This document shows, piece by piece, positions 7,212 to 64,000 of a stretch of 64,000 nucleotides of DNA; positions within the stretch are counted from its first letter, which is position 1; every line of letters begins with the position of its first letter. The translations under genes and the position numbers were made by a program. Origin of the DNA: Schizochytrium sp. TIO01 (Eukaryota > Protista > Bigyra: Labyrinthulomycetes); NCBI GenBank assembly GCA_004764695.1, contig SMSO01000035.1, positions 2,542,001 through 2,606,000 on the forward strand, read 5' to 3'. Below the pieces are notes generated by a model, which worked only from the letters and a program-made list of their open reading frames with translations, had not been told where the DNA came from and ran no database searches.

Positions 7212-7648
7212 CTCGCGAAGCCAAAGAACTGTTTTATGTCTCGCTCTTCATTGTCTTCGTAAGTCCAGGAAGGCAGCGTATTCGTGCTCGCGCGTCGGGC
7301 AACCACCAGAACCTCGGCCTTTGAAGTTGGTCTTGAAGACGATCGAAGAGCCCACGGTCCCCGTCTTCATCTTCCTTGCCCATGCAATCTCTAGAGTTCT
7401 TCTGCAATTTCCTGGCTGTGCCGACGCGCCGACCAGATAGGCGTCTGTCAGGACCTGATCCCCTCTGTCTTCGAAGCAGAAGCCGCCTTGCTCCACCACG
7501 GCGGCGTCGTTGGAGCTGTAGGTGCCTTTGTCGAAGGCGTCGTCGCCCTCCGGTGTTCAGTCAGCCCTGGGTCCTCGAGCCCGCGCGAAGAGTTCTGCCA
7601 GCCGCTAGCTAGCTCGCCACAGCCCGTTCGCTTTTGGCTCGTAGGTAG

Positions 7649-7682
7649 GTATGTATGTATGTATGTATGTATGTATGTATGT
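7649..7682. repeat. (TATG)n microsatellite
   Basis: Directly visible. Confidence 0.95.
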
Positions 7683-16902: not shown

Positions 16903-19900
16903 ATCGGCGACGAAGAAAAGAGATTTCGTGGAGATATTGTATATGAGTTGTTAGTAGCTACCTTCCTACCTCCCTTTGTTTGTAGGTAAGCATGTTTTTG
17001 CCATTGTTTCTCTTTCTCTCGAGAATGGCAGTTCTGAGGACGACGATTGTGAGGAGTGAGAACCCTGAAGCAGGCAAGGCCAAGGCATTCATTGATTCAT
17101 TCATTCATTCTTTCACCGGTCAAGGCGTCTTCTTCGCCAACCAGCAAGATGCGATGAGAGGCGGAAAAGAAAGAGCTCGAAAGAAAAGCTGCCCCGAAGG
17201 CAGGCAAGCAGGCAGGCGAGCAGGGAAGCGAGCGAGACTCCGCGCTTTCGAAGTCGATTCGCGATTGAAAAGCAAAGTCGATGATCGATCGATCGGAGAG
17301 TGAGTCCTGCTCGTACTGCGATATTTTCTATTTTCTATTTTTTTAATAAGAAGGGGATAGAGAACAGGTAGGAACTGGTAGAGGCCTGGCTGAGAGGCAG
17401 TCCTAGAGGCCATATAGAGGATTGAGTAGGGAAAAGGCAGGCGCCGCCCGTAGCAGAGACGCTTTAGGTGAGAGTCCATGCGGAATGGGCCCCAAAGAGG
17501 CAAATAGCAGCGGAGACTCCTTCTTTGATGTGCCTCTAGCTAGGCGGGCCGAAGCGGCGTCCGAGGCAGTTCTTCGCAGAAAAGAACTCACTGCTCAAAA
17601 GATTCTTTTAGAGGGTTTGCAGAACCTTAGAGAACCCTGGGCAAGACGAAGTTTAGACCCGGGTTCTGGCGAAAGCAGCAGAACTCGACGAAGAATTAAT
17701 TCTGTAAGTTTATTTATTTTATTTTATGTTATTTTATTCTATTTCAGTTTTCATTTTGAAATATGTAAACAATCTGAATTTGAACTTAAATTTGAATTCT
17801 GATGAATAAGTTGGAAAATAGGAAATGGTACGAAGATGAGACCATGGTGCAGAATCAGACGCAGACCTACATACCCACCTACTGTGGAGCTTGAGCAAGC
17901 TCACGCTGGAGATGGATTTCGACTTGATTTTCTCGATTCGAGCGGCAGGCCTGCCCTCGGGGCCTTTGCTAATTGCTGGACGCGGAGAGACTCCACAACG
18001 TGTAGCTGTCGATCGCCTCCAGTTCTCCGAGTTGCAGATTTGAAAACCTAAACGCTTCGAGAATGCCAACTCTAGTCTAGCGAAGAAAGCGGATCAAGAT
18101 TGATGTTGGAGGCGCCGGAGCGCCTTCATGCACAGCGAGAACGACGCGGAGGACGCCAATGGCCCGTCGCTGAAATTGTGCCAGAGATCGTGAATGCTAG
18201 TGCTCCCTAGGTACCGGGCAAATCATGAATCATCATGGTCCAGCAACCAATGGTATGAATCATGAGCCTGTCGGCACTTGCCGATTCAAGTTGCTCAGGG
18301 GTCACCCGGTCGCAACGCGTGAGTTCATCGTGGTGGTTCAAGTTCTTTCCGAAAGAGCTCGTGAGGTCTAATCTATCAGCTGCTCCACCGACCAATTGAT
18401 CGATCAGCCGCTCAGTGTGTACGCCGCAGTGGACATCCATCTAGACAGGTCCTCACCACAGGTCGTCTCTGGGCTCTCGGACTGACTGAGCCGCCGCCGC
18501 ACGCGCTGCGAGCGAGGGAAAGCCACCGCCGGCTAGCAAAAGCAGCAGCAGACCAAACCTCTGCGAGCTGCGCCCGTGGACTCGCAATCTCCAGTTAGAT
18601 TGCTTTCAGGTTTGCATGCTTGCTTTCAAGTTTGCTAGTATCCTGAGGCCTGCACTCTCAACCACTTTGACGACCACGATACGATGCCGGAGACAGCACC
18701 AATTAGCTGTCTGGAACGAGCATGTGACCTCCGGAGCTTCATGAGCTCGATCATCAGCAAAGGTTTCACGGGCGAAAGCGATCTTGCATTGATTGGCCCA
18801 TCCATCACTTGGCTTCGAAGGCCTTCTGCACATCTTCGGAAAGCAGGCGCCAAAGCAGGAAGCCCGAAGCGGTCCCTTCGCACCGCGAGCTGTTCGCTCC
18901 TTCTTCGTAGCACACCTATCGTGAAGAAGATGCAGGCCCAGACCCGCCCTGCGAACTCCGCCGCCCAGGTAGGTTGCTGGTTCTGCGAGCGCAGCAGCAA
19001 CTGCGGCAGTCCGAAGCGAAGCAGGCCAGCCAAAACGAGCAGCGCCTCCTTGCTGACGAGGACGAGGCCCGGCTCGCCGCTGCTTTTGGAGCTTCTGCGA
19101 TTCACTCGTACACACACACTCACACACACGCACAAAGCTTCTTCTGGTTCGCCACTCTTCATTGTCTGTAATCTTTTCTTCCCTCTTCTTTTCTTTCAAA
19201 GGTCAATTAATTCTGTGTGAACACGGTAGGCAGGGGGCAAAGAAATGCAATCTTTACGGATACACGGAAGTAGCTAGTAGTACCATTCTTCCTCGCAAGG
19301 TGAAGAACTATTTTGAACCTCAAGTTTTTGTTTGTTTTTAGGGAACTGCTTCATCGTCGTCGTGGCCCATTTTCAATACGGCGCTGAGGCCTCCCAAGTT
19401 GGGCTTATGGACTCCTATGGTTAACGTTGGGAGGCCGCGGCCTCTCGAAGCAGTGTCCGTGTTGTCGACAAACTTGCACAATTAGTAATAGGTAGTAGAT
19501 GCAGACGTGATGATAGTAAGTAGGTACCTAATTTGCAGCTAGTATTGTATTCAACCTTTTCAAGAAGCCATTTGAACAAAACTGATTGAATAAATGAATG
19601 AATGAATGAATGAATAATTGAATGGATGAATGATGTAGCCTCTACGTAAGAAGATTTTCAACCCGAATCTCGTACATTATCGTAGAAGAAATGAAGTTTC
19701 TTCCTGAGCCTTGTCCGTTTCGGCGCTAAGAAGTGTACCGGGTGGGTGTCTGGCAGCTTCTTTGGTGTTTCGGAATGACTAGAGGCTTGCTTGCACGTTT
19801 GCTTGCATCTTGCAGGCGGATTCGCAGGCAGCACAACTCTTACAGGCTTGAGGTGCTTTCTACAACTATTTTGGCGATCTGAACACCAGTCAGTCATCTC

Positions 19901-27081: not shown

Positions 27082-28180
27082 CGGTCAACAGTAAATTACT
27101 TTTGTACAGAGCAAGGCGTTCAATCTGCTAATCTATTCTTCCCTCCTTCACTCCGCAAAAAATAAAAGAAAAAGAATCCTTTTCGATACCAAGCTTCAAG
27201 GCAACTTTTGAAGGACCCCCACTGCACAGGCCCTCTTACTTGGCGACAACGCTAAAGACCAAGCAAGCCTTCAGATCCATCAATCAATCAATACCTCGGC
27301 CTAGGTAAGCTCAAAGTGAGCTGTTCTACCAAAGCCAATGTTTTAATGCAGCAACCTCACCTAATCCCTGCCAAACCCCGAGTGTTCAGAGGGCCTTGGA
27401 CGCGGAATTCTCCAACAGTTGCAGTACTGTATCTTCATCACCTTGATGATCATCATCATCGTCATCAGCTGCAATGAGGCCAGAAGAACAACTGGTAGAA
27501 AAAAGAACAGCAAACGACTAGGCAGTGGCTACTAGGTACTATCTGCCTGGAACCCAGTACTACCGAGTTCTACTCTCGCTAGAATAGAACGAACTAGCCT
27601 ACTAGTAGAAGAGCCAACAAGCATGGAACCACCAAAGAACCACTGCAGAACTCTAGCTGCTACTGTGGAGATAAATAGGGTAGTTTTATACGAGTGGAAC
27701 CACAGTCTGGGGTATTAGTATGAGGGAGTTGGGGTACTCGTATTTCATTTTGAAACACCAAGTTTGCTTCAGAGGACATTCTTCGTTTCCTGCACTTTCC
27801 TCGTGTTCTCAAGCTCGGTCTTTCCTCTGTACGCCCCGACCTCCGAAACCTGAGCGCTCTTCAGGGTCTCATTGCTTGATCCTATACCTCAGCTTGATCT
27901 CCTCCCTCACCTCCGAGCTCCACGATGTTTTGCAGGCCAGAAGAAGAACTCTGATCTCAGGAGACCTGCGCATTTCATACAGACTCCGCTAGGAACACTC
28001 AACCCACCATTAGGACCTATTTCGCATAGTAATATGCTAAATTTCAGCAGCTTGCGTATTAGTATGCTGTCTCTGTGCAGCGCTTGCAATTGCTTACTCG
28101 TACAGAAAGTCATAGCTAAGCTTTAGAGCACCAGAGGCAGTCCAGAAAAGAGAGGGAAAAGACAACAATGACGATCGAAA

Positions 28181-32182: not shown

Positions 32183-33097
32183 GATGCTTTGTCAATGAGT
32201 CCCTGCCCTCGTCCTGGGGCGAATTTCGCCTCAGGCGTCACCAATGTCTGTGTCGGCTCACAGACTGAACTTAGTTATCACCGCGTCAAGAACCACCTTC
32301 TCCGCTGTGAATCGCAAAGTTTCTGGTTTGCTTTCCCGTCAGGAGTTGCCTTGCACGAACTTTTTTCTAAGTCTACACCGCGGCCTTGTTCTCCGGACAG
32401 TGACTGGAAAGGTGGCTAGCCACAGCTATGTCTCCTCTAAAAATTGTCCAGCTGATCGCCCGTCCTGGCAGCGGCGTTGGACTAGTTCAGGTTCTGTTGC
32501 ACGGCAACTTGTGCAGCAGCTGGTTTGAGTTTGCTGCGTCAGTGGCGTTGACCTTGTTCTGCTGGTTTCAGGAGCGCTGCTTCGGTACTTTTGAGAGGCC
32601 GTGCAGAAAGAAAGCACCTGAAATGGAAAGTTTAAAAGAAACACACAAGAAGTGAAGCTGGTTCTTCTTGTTTTGCCTTGAGTTCGTTCTATTCTGACCC
32701 GCAGAGAACAACTCCGAGGAATGCTCTCGCGATTGTTGCTTTGTTGTGACATTGAACGTGATTATTGTCCAGAAAATTGATTGCTTGTCACCCAATTTTA
32801 ACTTAATCTTAAAAAAAAAAAAAAAAATTATTTCTAAATATGTGTGATAATTGATTCCTTGATTATTGTCCTTCCTATGTGGTCCCATCCGCTCCTGCGC
32901 AGGAGTACTTTGATTGGATTAGCCTCGCGACCGATCCAGCAAAGCCAGGTTGTGGCAGACCTCGACAAGACGCTCGCTTGGTAGGAGTGGGGGAACTGGC
33001 ATGGATGTCTTCAAGTTGGCTGTTGCGATGTTCCGAAATGGACTGCACGATTCGGAAGACTCCGTCAAAAGAAACTAGCATCACAATGACTGCCGCA

Positions 33098-55039: not shown

Positions 55040-55282
55040 TCATGCCTTCTTGCATTGGAACTCGCATGCAAGCACATCAAACTCTGGGTTGGTGGTACCT
55101 TCGTCTGTGCACGCGTTAAGGCAGTCAAGCCAAGCCTCGCTGCTGAAGTCCGTGGCAGACATGGTTTTGCGTGCACGCATGACTCTCGGCATGGACTCAC
55201 TACGAAGATGAGCTGCCTCGGCATTAAAGAGGCAAGCAGCCAGAAAGACAGTGAAAGCCAACAAGATGTTTTGGAGCTGCAT
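55040..55282 (-). CDS. 80-aa secreted prepropeptide with twin CX3C motif
   Basis: ATG at 55282 in A-rich context; signal peptide MQLQNILLAFTVFLAACLFNAEA; basic pro-region ending RARK; acidic C-terminal domain with CLNAC-x14-CEFQC. Confidence 0.72.
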   Translation of the reverse strand: MQLQNILLAFTVFLAACLFNAEAAHLRSESMPRVMRARKTMSATDFSSEAWLDCLNACTDEGTTNPEFDVLACEFQCKKA

Positions 55283-58200
55283 GATTCTTGATTTGATATT
55301 TGAATTCTCGTACGATACCAAGGTGTTGCTGGCTAGGAGTGTCCTCAAATTCTGCTCGTTTAGAAGCTGGTCTCGAGCACGTAAAAGGGCGCAAGCTCGA
55401 TAGATAGATTTCTAATCCAAAAGGTTTGATTGCAAGCTAGCAAACAACTTGATGTGCAAGAAGACGAGAGTGAACGTCTGAGCGATCGCAAGCAGACCAC
55501 ACGCCTTGAAGAACTCAGTTGCCTAGCCAGGAAGGGAGCTGCCCGCACGCAATGGACGAAGAGAAGAGTCTTAGAAGGCAAGCTTTTGAAAAACGAAGCC
55601 AACTAGTTCCAAAGGACGAGTCTCAACGAGTGTTTGCGAGTACGCAGGGGCCTCTGTTTGAGTTTGGGGTTTGCTTGCACAGCACTTGGGCTTGGCGACA
55701 GCAATTGGTTGGTAGATCTTTTGTTGACGGATAGTTGCCTAACGAATTGGGTGTTTGCAAGGTCAACTAATCAAATAATCCCCACGAGGTTTCTTTTTCT
55801 CTTTCTTTCTTCCTCTCTAGCTAGGCATTTTCCTTTAGGAAATTCTCAATGTTTCTCTACCTAGCGGTATCAGTATGGTTACTTCCCTTCTCCGCTTAAA
55901 AAAAAAAATAAAATGAATAAAACACTTTCTCACTCTCTGAGAACTTGAAAGTGAAATGGAAAAGAGAAACTTTCGTCTCCGAGCCTTCTGACTTAGTCTC
56001 CGCTAGAAAGATGCACATTAGCTGTGCAGACACCTCAAAGCACGCCTCCTAAACCTTGGACTTTGATGCCTGAATGCAAAGTGCTTTGCTTATTTGTTGG
56101 TCTGTTTGTTTGTTTGTTGGTTGGTTGGTTGGTTCAGGTTGTTTATTTTCTATTGTTGGCCAAGTCGTACATAGTTGTTCTTATTGAACGCAATGATCAA
56201 AGTTTCATACCTAAACAGAGACGGTGATCATTTTAGTTTAATATTGCTATCTAAAAATCTTTGTTTTCTTCAAAACAAATTAAAATAACAAACAAGGAAT
56301 AACTTCTACTTTTTCCTTTTTTTAGTTTCTTCAAAAAGGTAGGCGTCCTCATTGAACTCTCGTGAAGGCAGCCTCAGAGCCACAGTGAAGCGGCGACTTC
56401 TGACGAATCATTCTGCGGTGCTGCATTCAATTTCTGCAGAAGAACCCAACATCGCGAGGCTGAGCCCGGCTTCCATCGAGGCGGAGCTCTGTTTGCATCG
56501 AAGGAGACCCCGCAAAGAAAGAGAATCAAAGCCGCGATCTTTGGCCATTTCAATTTCAATGGGACTCCGTGCTAGAGGCTACCTCCCTTAAACTCTACTG
56601 CAGGTGCGGGAGCCGCGTTTTCTGCGACTGTGAGCTTGAACTTCGAAATGAAAATAATTTTTAAGAAATTTTTAATTCAAAAAAAGAAAAAAAGAAAAAG
56701 GAAAAAGGAAAAGGGACTTTCGTTTCGTCTCTTCACGGATATTAAAAAAAGGAATGCAGAAGTTGGCACCAGATACTTCATTAGCTCATCGCCTGTCTCA
56801 ATCCTGCAGCACCGGCCAAAGCAAAGCAGCGCCACTCCCGCTCCCACATCGCCCCCGTCCTCGCCCCGACAGGCTTCTTTGTCGGCCTCGATGGTCAAAC
56901 TGAGCGACCAAGCTTGATCGAAATCGATCTCCAACGAATCAGTTGCAAAGCGGTGGGTCTTTCTTTCAACAGGCAGGTCGACCAGGGCGGCGGCTCCTCT
57001 TATGGTTAACACTAGGACTAGGTAGCAGTAGTAAAGGTAAAGCAGGGCGTAGGAAAAATCAGTGCTATTTCTTTGTTGCTTTATTTCTTCGTTGCTTTTT
57101 TTCTTCTTTTTTTTCTGTCTTCCTTTCTTTGATCTCTGTTTGCTAATTTGCTTATTTATCGACGGGTTATCGACGGCTTCTGCATCGATTTGTGCGCAGG
57201 AATGGCAATACGGATGGATGTACCTAGATCATCACGTCAGAACTTGGAATTCGAATTCGCTCGTTGCATTTTGGCGAAGAAGGGATGGAGCTTTGTCCAA
57301 GAGAATGGTGGAACAGGAGGTGCCCAAATGTTACCCTCGTAGAAAAACAAGTTACGCTCGAGTTTGATTGATGCCTTGGCATTTATTTATTCATCCGAGT
57401 CCTCTTCCCTATCTTTTTATTTCAAAACAGGAACTATTCGCCAAACAGCGTTGAATAGCGGCTCTTGTTTGTTTTAATTCGCCAGGCCTACTCTAGGTTA
57501 TCTACTTCTATGCCAGCCGAAAGTCTTACTTATGGTAATCAATTCATACATAATACCTTTTATTGGAACCTCTTTTAACTTTCTTAAAAAAAATATATAT
57601 ATTTTTTTTTTTTATGTTTTGGAAATGGATAGATTGGATAGATAGAGCGAAAATAGAGTGTTTCTATGACTGATGAGAGGGTGAATTGGAAAGCTTAAGT
57701 TAGTGTGGGTAGTGAAGAGCGATCGGAGGCGGGGTGAAAAAACTCCTAATCGCATCTACGGCAAAGGCGTAGGAGAGGTCCGGTACGCACAGACTTGAGC
57801 CCGAATTTAAATCCTGTTTTATCTAATTTTAATGCCTTTCAATAAGAATATGTACACATGTATATATGTATATATGTATACATACATCTCTGAGAAGGAG
57901 TAGAAAAGGAAAGAGTGTCTGATATAATTACAAAAAGACAAGAAACGAGCGCATGCCTGAGCCCTCGCTCCCATTGGAGAGATGAGGCGCGTGGACAGTT
58001 TGGGCATCTGAACGGAATAAGTTGGCATGCGCAGCGTGCGGAGATTGCGGAGGTCAGGCGGAGAGACCTCTTTGCACAAGCCAGTGAAGGAAAGTTAAGA
58101 GCCTCCCGAACCTGGCTTGGCTCTGCAAGAAGACCAAGGCAAGTCGAGTTGCGAAGTTTAAGCGGGCTGACTGTCAAGATCAAGAAGAGTCAGGAAATCA

Positions 58201-58372
58201 AAAGACTGTATGCAAAGGGGAAAAGAGCGTAGTTCAAGTCCTTCGGAGATGATAGAGCCTTCTTCGTTGCGTCGACTTCGAAGTGGCAATAGCCAGACGC
58301 CTTCTTGCTAAGGCGTCCACCATAATGACACGTTTCCTTCTCCAAGTTTTGTGTATAATTCAGTTTTAAACA

Positions 58373-58389
58373 TTGATTGATTGATTGAC

Positions 58390-58438
<49 letters not shown>

Positions 58439-58467
58439 CCTTCATTCATTCATTCATTCATTCATTG
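58373..58467. repeat. (GATT)n to (CATT)n compound microsatellite
   Basis: Directly visible. Confidence 0.95.
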
Positions 58468-60317
58468 ACACGTACCTTTAATCAATCAACCAAACTCGTA
58501 AATATATTCAAAACACCTCGCACAAACAACTTGACGAAGCTATCGTGCGTCCATCTGTTCGGCATTCTATTAGGTTGCCTGATTCCTGCAAGTATTAGGA
58601 CAGGTTTTCGCCAACTGCGATACAAAGAAGCATGAAATCCCTTTTCAAATTAAAAAATAAATACATATATATTAACAGAACTAACTCTTTGAGCTGTCTT
58701 TAGCATAGGTTCCATGAGGGGAGATCTAGCACGTGCAGGAGATCGCAACGAAAACTACCATCGGGCACCTGTAAAAGAGAAGCCCGCCGAGATGCATCTG
58801 GGTTTGGCTCTTCTCAAAGAAGCGAATGCCGCCAGAAGGTTTGCAAGTCATCAGGATGACATGATGTTTGGTTGAAAGGGTGATGAACAATAGTCCTCCC
58901 AAAAGCATGTCTGCCAGCAAAGGTCCGTCTATCCATTCATCCACTCATGTCCATCCATTTCTTGTACTCCATCAGTGCTACGATTAAATTAATTACCTAG
59001 ACACCCTGACGGCTCAAGATGGGCAATTCGGTCTACACCCACTCGCTCGATTCACGCGCCAGCCCATCAGGGAGAACCGACTTGTGCAAAATTAACTCGC
59101 TGGACATTCAAGGTTGCTGTGTACCTAGTCACCTCTATGAAGGCCGTGCTGCATCCTAAATGGCATACGCCCCTTTTTGATCAGGAGAGCGCGCCACAAC
59201 GATCTTACTCATCCACCTGCGGCAAGTTTCGACTGTTCTGCGGCTGCTACCAATCTTCCGGTGGACCATCGCTCGCTCGTAAGCATTCATGCATCTATCC
59301 ATCCAAGTTAATTTCGAACTGAGTTTGCAACTCGTGGTGATCTTGAAGTTGATCATGAGGATCGTTCTGTGAAACTTAGGCTTGTACAAAGAAAGTGAAA
59401 AGTACGCGCTGAAAAGGCGGTCCAATGAGTTTGCACACACGTGAAAAGTAGGAAATTGAACGTAAGAAAACACCGCAGTGCACCTGGACTCACGCTCGCA
59501 ATCTTAGAGCACGGTAGCCCGGAGCAGAACCAGACCCGCCAAAGAGCCCTGGCTGGAACAAGACTCGTGCCACATCAAGGAGCAGGAGCTCCAGCTCCTT
59601 GAGACGTCCGAATTACTTCTTCGGATTGACCAGGGGACATATGGCGGAGTTTTTAACATGTTTGTTAACTACTTCAGTTCATTTAAATTCATTTATTTGA
59701 GAGGGCCACTACTCCTCCTACTGGGAGTAGGCTAGCGAGCTGAGTTTTATGAACAACTTGAAATTAAACTCATTTGTTACCCACTCGTAATGAGAGTGCT
59801 AGTCAGGGTTTCTTTTTCTTTTCTTTCTTTCGTTCAAATTCATCCAAACTGCCGCTGGCGCTTTCCCTTTTCCATTCCTTTTACCCTTTCTATAAAATAA
59901 CTTAAAGAAGGCTTCCAAGTTCTGGACTTTAAAATTAAAATAACCTGGGATTTTTTTTCTTATTAACTATTCTTTTAAAATTAAAACTATAACTTGTTTT
60001 AATTTCAACCTCATGCTCGAAAGATACTAAAACTTGAAAGGCATAGCATTCTGTGATTCAATGACATCTTTAAGGTCTCCAGAACTGAAAACTGCAGCTG
60101 AAGTCCTACGAAGACGGCCGACCACATTTTGACCATTTCAGAGACACTGAAAAATGCAGACAGAGCATACACATATAGACAGGTACGCGAAAGTTAGCAC
60201 TTACGGAAAGTTAGCCCTTACGGTTTGATTCATGAAAGTTGGAGTCCATCAGCGAAAAAAGACACTGGTAACAATAACGCTAGGCACGCCATAGGCCTGC
60301 CTCAGAGAGCATGCTAC

Positions 60318-60344
60318 CTATCTATCTATCTATCTATCTATCTA
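60318..60344. repeat. (ATCT)n microsatellite
   Basis: Directly visible. Confidence 0.9.
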
Positions 60345-61229
60345 TCCGCTCAACTGTAAGAGGAGAAAGAGGCTTCGTTCAAACATCCAATAAGACTCGA
60401 GAGACTCAGAGAGGGATTGACGAGAAAGCTGAAAAGCGGCTTGCTTGCGTGAGGCCGCTGGGGCTTTCGAGGATCAGGCAAACGATCGATCGAGACCAGA
60501 AAGGCATCGAAAACCTTCCCGGTTCTCCAAGATTTGGGGTTTCCCCATGATTGATGGATTGATTGATTGATTGATTGATTCAGAATCGAAGCAAGGCAGG
60601 AAGCAAGGAAGGAAGGAAAGAAAGGTTGCCAAGATCGTTCACCGTTTCCCAGCAAACCGACGCCTGCCTCCTATGCAAAACCCTAACACTGCTAGCGACA
60701 AACAGGCTTTGCCTTCAGTCCTCTTTCCTGTCCTGCTTCAACTCCATATCTTATGAAGCGCCGTCACGAGAGAATAATGCGCTCCTAGGACGCACTAGCC
60801 AACAGCTAGGCAGCCTTAGGTAGAGGCTAGCAAGTCTTTTAGCAGACCGCGTGCCCCTCCCTGCTTACCCTAGCAGCGCCTAACTACCCCCTACTTGAGA
60901 CCTGCGCGTTGCTATGTATTGCGTGCACAAAGCCGCTCCTCAGGCTTTGTTGATGTTCTGTTCCACTGCCAGAGCATGTGTTTGGAACGGCCAATGGTCA
61001 ATCAATCATCAGTATTGATGTACGTGCGAATTGGCGGTCTGTCGGTTGGAGCCCTGGTCTTCCTTCGTTCGATCCACTGCAGAGGCTCGCGAGTCGGCTC
61101 CTCGAACCAGCTGCTGAAGAGCGCCGGGCATGGCCTGGGCCGCCTTTGAGAAGCCGGCGCCCGAGCCTCCGAAGCCTTTGGCACGCGTGGCCGCGGTTGC
61201 GTGTCTTGCGCTGCCAAGATAGCCTGTCG

Positions 61230-61307
<78 letters not shown>
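61230..61307. repeat. (AAAG)n microsatellite
   Basis: Directly visible. Confidence 0.95.
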
Positions 61308-61308
<1 letters not shown>

Positions 61309-62549
61309 GGGGTGTCCTAGCGGCGGCTATGTGGATGGTATCGAAAGGCCACTGGGGCTGCGATTGGAAATGAATGGGTTTCGAGACGGAGGAGGAGGAG
61401 GATTGGGATCCTTAGAACGCGACCTAAAACCGGGAAGGAGGAAGAAGAAGGCGCTGAAAGAGGAGAAGAATGCTGTCGGGAAGCAGAAAGCGCCGTTTGC
61501 GTGCTTTTGTGGCCATCTAAGTTGTTGAATTGATCATCGATTCATTGCGGTTTGTTTGAAAGCAAATTGTTTTAACTTAATTAATTAAGTTAATTAATTA
61601 AGTTAATGAATAATTGAAAAGTGAATATGAAAAGGAGTTTGTGGGAAATAAATCCACTAAAGAACTGCGTTAGTTTGGGTGAGGATTGGATCTCGTTCGT
61701 AAACTGCATGCAATTCGTAAAGACGGCCGGCGCATGCATCTGAGTGCAGCACAGCACAGGGAGCTTAGGCAATGCCCGGCCGGTCAAAGAAGAGCTCCAA
61801 CCGGTACCTGGTCTGTCTGCGCGTAGGAGGATTGGGGAAATTGTACGAGGAGGCGAAGGTGATTGAAGATTTTATTTAATCTCTCTAAGAGTTGAAGTAG
61901 TAGGTAGATACTCAGGTAGCTAGCGGACAAGGGTGATGGTAATGAATAGTAAAGTTTATGTTTAATTTAAAAAGAGCTTCAAGCTTGAAGGGTGTTGACT
62001 ATAGGTATTAAACTACCAAGAGCAAATGAAAAAAGCTCTTTTCTCCAGCTTGAGCGGGGCTAGCTTACCGGACTAGGGGATATGGAGTTGAACTAAAGCT
62101 AAAGGACCAGTCTTCTTTGCTGCACATGCCGTTGAAGTATGCCCATCAGCTTGCCAGATGAAATTTAGATTGGCGCCTACTTTGGCGCAGCCATTCAGGC
62201 TGGAGATCTAAGCTTGGACTATTAAAACTCCAAGACAGATTGATATAGAGACTCTGGTTGTTAGCTCAAAATATGTCATGTGATGCGTATGCAATAAAGA
62301 TTTTAGATAAGATGTTCACAAGCACGCAGCTGTGAGGGACTGCAGGTCGGGCGAGATTGCCCCAGCACGTGCAGACTACTGCAATATAATGTTGGTAAGT
62401 GCAACATATCTAGCTAGTGATGAAAGTGAACAGGTGCGAATGCAGTTCTCTTGATATACCAATATAATCGTGGATTGTCACCATAATACAAGCGAAACAT
62501 CACGTATTTTAGAGTGGCAAGCCAATATTTTGTAATATTTTAAAAGAAG

Positions 62550-63240
62550 AGCTTTCCAGAGTTTGTGGGTCAGATTTTTGTCTAACTCACAAGGTCCAAG
62601 TTAATGGTGTGTACTAAGATAATGTTTGACCTCATTCAGAAGTGTGCAATTTCTTTTGCAATTCGTTTTCTTCAAACAACCTGAATGTAAAGTCTTACAC
62701 CACTATATGTGGAACTATCAGTATTGTGGCGTACGCTAATTTTCAACCAAAACCCAACATATCACCCATTTGGGATACGCCGATTGGCATACTGATATCC
62801 AGAAACCCCCCTTCGACATAAGACCTAAAACCGTAGAAGTCCTGAAAGATAACAATAAAGCTAAATCAATTTGCTTTGAGTTAAAAAAATAAACTATCAG
62901 GTTTGCACTCCTTGAGGATGATATATGAGCAAGGAGACTCAGAAATATTGACGTCCATCTGAGGGGAGATGGGGGATGCGAACATACGCACTGAAAAGCT
63001 GCATAACTGATTCTATGCAGTCTATGATGAAGGCCAAGGGTCAGGAGATGTATACGTATATACCATATTCACGAATTTGCTCAGCTTATCCAGAGAAACA
63101 AAAAGTTACTTCACTATGGACGGTACGGAACTGCGTATATTTGTCTCTTTTCAACCAATCTCGTGAATGTAAGAACAACTCATACTAGCCAGAACTGCTC
63201 ATTATGATAGCCCTCGTGACTTCTGCAAGCCTGTGAGCCC
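62550..63240 (+). pseudogene. Possible heavily decayed P-loop NTPase (Crinkler-associated NTPase-like) fragment
   Basis: Broken-frame remnants GPS.../TKIMFDLIQKCAISFAIRF (about 62593-62675) and FYAVYDEGQG...YFTMDGTELRI (about 63011-63150), about 140 codons apart; many stops and frameshifts. Confidence 0.3.
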
Positions 63241-63950
63241 CTCAAAGATAGAATGCAGAGATAGGGAACAGGACAGCGTTAATATCCAACAGCCAAACAT
63301 AAATTGTAGAATAACTCGTGATACGTGTTCCGGTAATTACCCCCCTTCCCTTCCGCGATTAAATAACAGTTTATTTAATCGATCGCTATAAATTTAAAAC
63401 TTTATTCAATTGTTTTAAACTTCTTTTTTTAAATATTGTTTTTGGCAGGGAAACTTTTCTTCAATGAAAACAGATGAACGAAGGGCACGCGTTGTCTACA
63501 CGACAAAGTATGCATCTCATATGCAATACCCAATATTATATATTATGCTGTGCGATCGATTGCAGGAGACGAAAATTTGAAAGACATGAAAGACAGCGCC
63601 CTTAGGGCCAAAACCTATGGCCGCGAACACTTTTGCCCTCGAGTTCACAGAACCGCTTCAGCCTATTACTATTATTGTCGTTGTTGTTTTGTTTAATTTT
63701 AACATTAAAAAATAATAAAATAAATCTAAAATGCCTGTGAACGTGATGAAGAGAAGAGCGATACGAACTTGTAAGTTTGAACAGAATAGAGATCGATGAT
63801 GAGGTTTTTTAGAAACTCATCTGAATTCCTTTTTTTTACGTTTAAAACGATTGTAACAAAAGAGACGAACGCGAATGCAGAACACGAGGCAGTCGCAAGT
63901 GGAAGCAGCGTGCCGCCACGTGCTCGGGCATTCATTGAATCTAAGAGAGA

Positions 63951-64000
63951 AAGAAGAAGAAGAAGAAGAAGAAGAAGAAGAAGAAGAAGAAGAAGAAGAA
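63951..64000. repeat. (GAA)n microsatellite running off the window end
   Basis: Directly visible. Confidence 0.95.

Follow-up and report, generated by a model that had tools for sequence, protein, structure and literature searches.

The window analysed here, a stretch of 64,000 nucleotides from the genome of Schizochytrium sp. TIO01, contains between positions 60770 and 60920 a ladder of TA steps at nearly helical spacing, which raises the question whether the locus is a natural counterpart of the nucleosome-positioning sequence 601 that has been kept by selection, or whether its pattern has another origin. An earlier note on this DNA described the locus as the clearest natural 601-like element of the stretch, and took the presence of about ten such patches in 64 kb as a sign of either selection for positioning or a rotationally phased mutational process. 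Its description of the sequence is accurate, as all of the TA coordinates are exact, 11 of the 15 TA steps fall on one lattice with a period of about 10.6 bp, and no ApT occurs from 60777 to 60914, AT steps being confined to the edges of the locus (Table 1).

Nine of the in-phase steps are rungs of related context, in the order CTAG, CTAG, CTAG, TTAG, CTAG, TTAG, two empty positions, CTAG, CTAA and CTAC; YTAG is thus shared by five CTAG and two TTAG rungs, to which CTAA and CTAC are added. The TA-to-TA steps of the left array measure 10, 11, 10, 11 and 12 bp, and its self-similarity, with peaks at lags 11, 21, 32 and 42, is carried by the CTAG cores alone. The right array is in phase with the left one and forms a weak period-10 repeat with the consensus unit CCCTACTACC (2.7 copies, 63% matches, score 29), reported by TRF at permissive settings only, while at standard settings TRF called no repeat at the ladder. 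The identity of the ladder at lag 21 is 0.46 (P = 0.04-0.08 over all lags tested). Two inverted repeats lie at or beside the ladder. An imperfect one with arms at 60779-60789 and 60869-60879 (GCGCTCCTAGG / CTAGCAGCGC-type arms, 10 of 11 positions complementary) encloses most of the ladder and is paired in the RNA fold, although chance alone would provide several such repeats per window, and a perfect 8-bp stem with an 8-nt loop (ACAAAGCC ... GGCTTTGT) occupies 60927-60950, just 3' of the ladder.

Table 1. Coordinates of the features of the TA/CTAG ladder, of its surroundings and of comparable sites (window positions unless a contig or extracted sequence is named).
Feature	Position	Details
TA steps, left part of locus	60775, 60786, 60796, 60807, 60817, 60821, 60828, 60840	
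TA steps, right part of locus	60866, 60871, 60881, 60885, 60892, 60913, 60917	
AT steps within 60770-60920	60774, 60777, 60914, 60918 only	both edges of locus
CTAG copies (five)	60785, 60795, 60806, 60827, 60870	
Left array	60785-60844	six consecutive YTAG rungs: CTAG 60785, 60795, 60806; TTAG 60816; CTAG 60827; TTAG 60839
G+C-rich centre lacking TA	60845-60865	three lattice turns, two rungs empty; dyad predicted by the earlier note at about 60855
Right array	60868-60895	CTAG 60870, CTAA 60880, CTAC 60891
Outermost left rung	60775-60776	context ATAA
Outermost right rung	60913-60914	context CTAT
ApT-free run	60777-60914	137 bp
Other long ApT-free runs, examples	7458-7651, 18930-19100, 32455-32623	
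Upstream microsatellites (TRF)	60314-60346, 60548-60580, 60588-60622	(CTAT)8, (TGAT)8 and GAAG-type, respectively
Downstream microsatellite (TRF)	61230-61308	(AGAA)20
CTAG-triplet sites elsewhere, examples	C6:1788371-1788406 (L022:1501-1536); C6:1948408-1948443 (L023:1501-1536)	

The TA phase resultant R was computed for every 147-bp segment at periods of 10.0-10.8 bp and compared with 200 shuffles in which the dinucleotide content was kept within 500-bp blocks. With R = 8.75 from 14 TA in 147 bp and a best period of 10.6 bp, the locus surpasses every other segment of the window in R and is fourth in R^2/n. Five segments have at least 11 of 14 rungs filled, four of them AT-rich (GC 8-24%), and the locus alone has a normal G+C content (55%), so that it is rightly called the clearest patch; rung-filling counts at control periods are similar. 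The maximum R of the shuffled windows is 8.91 ± 0.73, however, and 52% of these windows reach at least 8.75. Likewise, patches with R^2/n of at least 5 number 9 in the window versus 9.9 ± 3.4 in the shuffles, and a strict chain of six TA at steps of 10 or 11 bp is found in 8.7% of the shuffled windows. In a larger sample of 264 kb, which comprises the window and twenty 10-kb samples from the same chromosome, patches in the 10.0-10.8-bp band are no more numerous than those in the control bands of 8.5-9.2 and 11.5-12.4 bp. No TA periodicity of 10-11 bp is present in this sample, the amplitude being 0.003-0.006 at 10.0-10.8 bp versus 0.023 at period 3, and the autocorrelation of TA is dominated by periods 3 and 4, which belong to coding sequence and tetranucleotide repeats. 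As the patches are as frequent as in the shuffles, show no band excess and are accompanied by no TA periodicity, neither selection nor phased mutation is necessary to account for them, and the TA ladder at the locus, like the set of patches as a whole, needs no explanation beyond chance. A patch frequency matching that of shuffled sequence had been named beforehand as refuting the reading of the earlier note, and this is the frequency found; the inference drawn from about ten patches in 64 kb is lost with it, and the scan beyond the window points the same way. No sign of selection for nucleosome positioning was seen at the locus in the TA-phase tests of the window and of the 264 kb.

The ApT-free core was considered as a special feature in its own right and was rejected. 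The 137-bp run ranks only 12th longest in the window, and a run of this length has P = 0.028 when its own 500-bp block is shuffled. There are 12 runs of at least 137 bp in the window versus 1.6-2.5 in local dinucleotide shuffles (5-7 times more), the tails of the gap-length distributions of AA, TT and GC are as heavy as that of AT, and no peak at nucleosome length exists in the gap-length distribution in the window. The long ApT-free runs are a matter of compositional patchiness. The asymmetry of TA over AT was rejected in the same way, as the value at the locus (13) is shared with another site at the top of the window and (TAAC)n and (CTAC)n microsatellites account for the stronger cases elsewhere. 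The site with the same value (27475-27660) is a second CTAG/CTAC-rich, ApT-poor patch with five CTAG within 90 bp, which is situated in the spacer between the divergent genes for a lipid-droplet hydrolase and NFU1 and is unphased at 10.5 bp.

The immediate context of the rungs behaves differently. The pairwise identity of the rung flanks (positions -1/+2) is 0.60 versus 0.26 at G+C-matched random TA sites (P = 0.0004), while the unit columns outside the core are barely alike (0.31 versus 0.25-0.28, P = 0.03-0.16). At least six chained TA steps, all in flank contexts permissive in vitro, occur in 1.3% of the shuffled windows (P = 0.013 per window), and ladders of YTAR (8 of 14 rungs) and CTAG (5 of 14 rungs) have P = 0.065 and P = 0.025 per window, respectively. 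Non-randomness at the locus is confined to a short series of CTAG motifs, which lie in non-coding DNA of unique sequence. Even this series might be pure coincidence, with unrelated TA and CTAG motifs falling on a 10.6-bp lattice, the best patch picked by eye and no duplication involved. Every statistic based on TA only is matched by 9-52% of the shuffled windows, the YTAR and CTAG ladder scores are equalled at unrelated periods in the 264 kb, and for most 4-mers of comparable abundance, clusters of at least four identical copies in 90 bp are 2-10 times more frequent than under a Poisson model. Nevertheless, given the ladder, CTAG at five and YTAG at seven of 11 rungs is improbable by the flank test above, the chain of six permissive rungs is rare, and the locus carries a type of CTAG triplet that is over-represented throughout the genome (see below), so that coincidence is considered a rather unlikely explanation, yet one of some weight.

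Three tetramer copies in a row were counted in the whole 64-Mb assembly and compared with the expectation under independence. CTAG triplets, with 4.5 expected, number 43 at steps of 6-7 bp, 153 at 10-11 bp, 113 at 12-13 bp and 33 at 13-14 bp, those at 12-13 bp being mostly (CTAG)n microsatellite. The corresponding counts for the reversed control GATC, with 11 expected, are 91, 52, 175 and 51. At 10-11 bp, GTAC, which is as abundant as CTAG in a genome sample, forms 12 triplets (expected 6), and CATG forms 94 (expected 15). CTAG triplets at 10-11 bp are thus 3.5-4.6 times as frequent as those at neighbouring spacings and about 13 times as frequent as those of GTAC, and the locus is one among the 153 sites. 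Given one pair at 10-11 bp, a third CTAG is found 62 times at 21-22 bp versus 52 times at 17-18 bp; the 10-11-bp preference is therefore one of nearest neighbours only and does not reach the second helical turn. By eye, about one fifth of the CTAG triplets listed are perfect 10- or 11-mer repeats, and the remaining four fifths or so have dissimilar G+C-rich spacers. The pattern of four CTAG with the last step fixed at 10 bp has 9-11 matches, of which four are outside perfect repeats, and these four arrays are 32-36 bp long and reside in DNA that contains no coding-like ORFs. At a distance of 340 bp from one four-rung array, a (CTAGCTAGCT)n repeat grades into degenerate 11-bp CTAG units; at L023:1840-1915 the perfect (CTAGCTAGCT)n repeat passes directly into degenerate CTAG/CTAC units 11 bp apart, which may be a snapshot of CTAG arrays forming and decaying. 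The preference of CTAG triplets for this spacing across the genome is a real effect.

The surroundings of the locus are poor in genes and rich in microsatellites. From 55300 to 64000, more than 8 kb, no ORF has coding-like codon usage; the ORFs in 57.8-64 kb score from -0.27 to 0.00 bits per codon versus +0.14 to +0.46 for the genes in the window, and ten nearby ORFs have no Pfam match, so that a coding exon was rejected. A small ORF on the minus strand at 55040-55282 has a gene-like score of +0.18 bits per codon. An RNA gene was rejected as well, as Rfam gives no hit at E ≤ 1 between 58 and 64 kb and the RNA folds of both strands are no more stable than those of shuffles (z-scores of -1.2 and -1.4). 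In the genome search, the segment 60700-60960 matches only itself and the stretch 56001-64000 gives microsatellite matches only. The 11-mer CAGCTAGGCAG of the locus is near the chance level, with 49 copies genome-wide versus about 30 expected, and a transposon or dispersed repeat was rejected on these grounds. Transcription of the locus was also rejected as a supported conclusion: the two runs labelled 'RNA?', whose nature as RNA was a guess, give long contigs over non-coding DNA that break at microsatellites and carry no splice joints, and thus behave like DNA assemblies. The locus was finally compared with contigs of four related isolates, which are roughly 1-1.5% diverged; all public runs that could be aligned to it consist of assembled contigs. 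No indel is present at 60631-60996 in the four isolates among the variants listed, and a length-variable repeat was accordingly rejected within that scope. The sole variant listed inside the locus is 60848 C>G, in the centre, with G in all four isolates, so that the C is either an allele peculiar to the reference or a mistake of the assembly; 60934 C>G, also among the variants listed, is just outside. As the divergence amounts to only about 1-1.5%, the conservation of the rungs in these isolates is uninformative.

The locus is regarded as passive DNA, non-coding and unique, within a stretch that is poor in genes and dense in microsatellites. It is provisionally interpreted, with about even confidence, as a cryptic array of CTAG cores in units of 10-11 bp that local duplication or slippage probably produced, with any influence on nucleosomes as a by-product. 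The core would consist of units of about 10.5 bp sharing only CTAG or a one-step variant of it, with six rungs at 60785-60844 and three at 60870-60895. These units may have arisen in the same way as the short tandem repeats of the genome and then diverged, the agreement of unit length with the helical repeat of DNA would be a coincidence, and the 'TA ladder' would be a by-product of the CTAG cores together with two outer TAs placed by chance. Several observations argue for this duplication interpretation: TA phasing does not exceed the chance level, the flanks of the rungs are alike, and CTAG triplets are in excess genome-wide; the right array is a weak period-10 repeat, and perfect 10- and 11-mer CTAG repeats are present elsewhere in the genome; short tandem repeats are dense, with 372 TRF arrays in the 264 kb (1.4 per kb), among which tetranucleotide units are commonest (65 arrays); and the sequence, present once in the genome, lacks Rfam and Pfam matches, a coding-like ORF and a stable fold. 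Other observations argue against it. The units show no clear likeness outside the YTAG core and TRF at standard settings is empty; since neutral decay should erode cores and spacers equally, similarity restricted to the core fits chance or a motif-level constraint equally well. Moreover, copy number does not vary in the four isolates among the variants listed, and about four fifths of the CTAG triplets listed have, by eye, dissimilar spacers. The distribution of repeat-unit lengths in the 264 kb (43 TRF arrays at periods of 10-11 bp, 59 at 6-7 bp and 20 at 13-14 bp) alone predicts no peak of CTAG at 10-11 bp.

A process aimed at CTAG itself was also considered, in which the rungs are either binding sites of a CTAG factor on one face of the helix, or footprints or target duplications of a mobile element inserting at CTAG, one 10-11-bp unit being added at a time in both versions. 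Such a process agrees with an excess that is CTAG-specific, confined to nearest neighbours and located in non-coding DNA. In the arrays listed, moreover, spacers often start with (G)CAG or end with CTG beside CTAG, by eye above the general level, as CAG directly after CTAG is only 1.6 times enriched around CTAGs in general; the locus shares this character, as it contains CTAGGCAG, TTAGCAG and CTAGCAG. The bias of the spacer ends is, however, a by-eye estimate, neither a factor nor an element emerged as a candidate, the single-copy locus contains no transposon remnants, and CAGCTAGGCAG is not a repeat family. This explanation is thus considered improbable.

The remaining possibilities concern nucleosomes. 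In reconstitution experiments, TA repeated at period 10 strongly promotes nucleosome formation if flanked as CTAG, TTAG/CTAA, CTAC/GTAG, TTAA, TTAC or ATAC, whereas flanks of the types GTAC, CTAT, ATAT and ATAA give no such promotion (Takasuka and Stein 2010, PMC2943623). The fall in free energy is linear as the number of consecutive TAs rises to about eight; four of them give about -1.7 kcal/mol, a 12-fold preference, and mixed periods of 9 and 11 bp are nearly as effective as 10 bp (PMC2943623). In 601L, TA occupies the minor-groove 'pressure points' at SHL ±0.5 to ±3.5, ranked as ±1.5 > ±2.5 > ±0.5 > ±3.5, with CTAG as the context of loosest stacking (Chua et al., PMC3401446). At ±5, ±15, ±25 and ±35, the tetranucleotides central to positioning are CTAG and TTAA, with the consensus YTAR (Collings et al., PMC2880596). 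All six rungs of the left array, and nine rungs in total, have flanks that are permissive according to PMC2943623, while the two outer rungs belong to flank classes that are average or low for nucleosome formation in the same study. For a dyad at 60855, steps of the YTAR type are located at -15, -27, -38, -48, -59, -69, +16 and +26, and CTAC at +37; the offsets -15, -27 and -38, and +16, +26 and +37, correspond to SHL ±1.5, ±2.5 and ±3.5, where the minor groove faces inward and sequences of the 601 type have TA, CTAG or TTAA (PMC3401446, PMC2880596). No TA is present at 60841-60865, and thus none at SHL ±0.5. TTTAA is absent from SHL ±1.5, the contexts there being TTTTAGC at -15 and CCCTAGC at +16. 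At a period of 10.6 bp, the G/C steps (SS) are not significantly in antiphase to TA (R^2/n = 0.41), GC steps are 116 degrees from TA (R^2/n = 1.06) and AA/TT is unphased (0.19).

The comparison with the geometry of 601 stands, while other features of 601 are missing. Like Widom 601 and 601L, the locus carries TA at intervals of about 10 bp, in contexts of the CTAG type, at SHL ±1.5, ±2.5 and ±3.5, on a similarly G+C-rich background (A+T of 45% at the locus and 43% in 601L). Unlike 601, it possesses neither TA at SHL ±0.5 nor TTTAA at ±1.5 nor a significant antiphase of G/C steps, its period of 10.6 bp results in a phase drift of about 2 bp over six turns, and there is no sequence homology. The locus resembles the synthetic period-10 TA DNAs of PMC2943623 in its consecutive TA steps at 10-11 bp with permissive flanks, six plus three in number, and this number lies within the range of the linear fall in free energy. 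The synthetic DNAs, however, have a strict 10-bp period and uniform flanks, whereas the locus has steps of 10, 11 and 12 bp, natural spacers, two empty rungs and four off-phase TAs. The head-to-tail units of 10-11 bp with a shared core are also reminiscent of cryptic or decayed minisatellite-like arrays, from which the locus differs in that similarity is limited to a core of 4-5 bp, TRF is negative at standard settings and no length polymorphism is seen in the four isolates among the variants listed. The 'strong nucleosome' sequences of Trifonov and co-workers (mentioned in PMC9249913) reportedly have a visible periodicity of about 10.4 bp in their purine/pyrimidine runs and are often located in centromeric or tandem-repeat DNA. 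The locus is similar to them as a single genomic site at which a helical-period pattern is visible by eye, but only TA/CTAG is periodic there, and the sequence is unique.

From these comparisons, an in vitro affinity above average and a defined rotational setting are expected for the locus with slightly better than even confidence. A nucleosome here would set the minor grooves of the CTAG/TTAG cores inward, with dyads near 60855 ± 10n, and judging from the published reconstitution data the affinity may be above average without ever having been selected for. It would fall short of that of 601 owing to the lack of TA at SHL ±0.5, the missing TTTAA and a 10.6-bp period that shifts the phase by about 2 bp in six turns. 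The locus is thus a cheap, well-defined candidate for natural strong rotational positioning, with nine in-phase TAs in favourable flanks.

A capacity of this kind is distinct from a natural 601-like element that selection keeps because its phased YTAR steps hold a single nucleosome at a fixed position and in a fixed rotational setting. The placement of YTAR at SHL ±1.5, ±2.5 and ±3.5 for a dyad near 60855, with further steps at -4.5, -5.5 and -6.5, the nine rungs with permissive flanks, the A+T content close to that of 601L, and the genome-wide enrichment at 10-11 bp of CTAG, which is permissive, over GTAC, which is non-permissive in vitro, are all in line with such an element. They are opposed by a patch frequency equal to that of shuffles, by the missing TA periodicity of 10-11 bp in the 264 kb, by the loss of the CTAG preference at the second helical turn (62 versus 52), and by the size of the other four-CTAG arrays examined, which at 32-36 bp are far below that of a nucleosome. 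TA is also lacking at SHL ±0.5, the G/C steps are not in antiphase, and at least 8 kb are devoid of recognisable genes, so that there is no obvious regulatory target. In addition, no such sequences have been found in genomes according to Chua et al. (PMC3401446). Selection for a 601-like element is thus very improbable; to call its geometry similar to that of 601 is a fair description, while the evolutionary inference drawn from this likeness is unsupported. A broader version, in which the genome retains about 150 CTAG-phased arrays since helically spaced YTAR steps lock the rotational setting of nucleosomes, is given still less credence. If it were true, the locus (60785-60895, nine rungs) would be the longest known member and the natural counterpart of 601, and selection would have left its mark in the specificity for CTAG over GTAC. 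Least credible is a mutational process, rotationally phased in nucleosomal DNA, that creates TpA at helical spacing, as nothing specific to the locus speaks in its favour, the 264 kb show no TA periodicity of 10-11 bp, patches are no commoner than in shuffles, and no rung has changed in the four isolates among the variants listed.

With duplication or slippage of CTAG-core units as the preferred origin of the array, the main value of the locus is one of calibration: an eye-catching TA ladder, and about ten patches in 64 kb, are what dinucleotide-matched random sequence provides, and 601-like calls are to be discounted unless they beat both shuffles and control periods. The part worth following up is the short-range excess of CTAG across the genome of this organism, whose preference for 10-11 bp may stem from a mechanism of duplication, from an element that targets CTAG or from a constraint on DNA shape.
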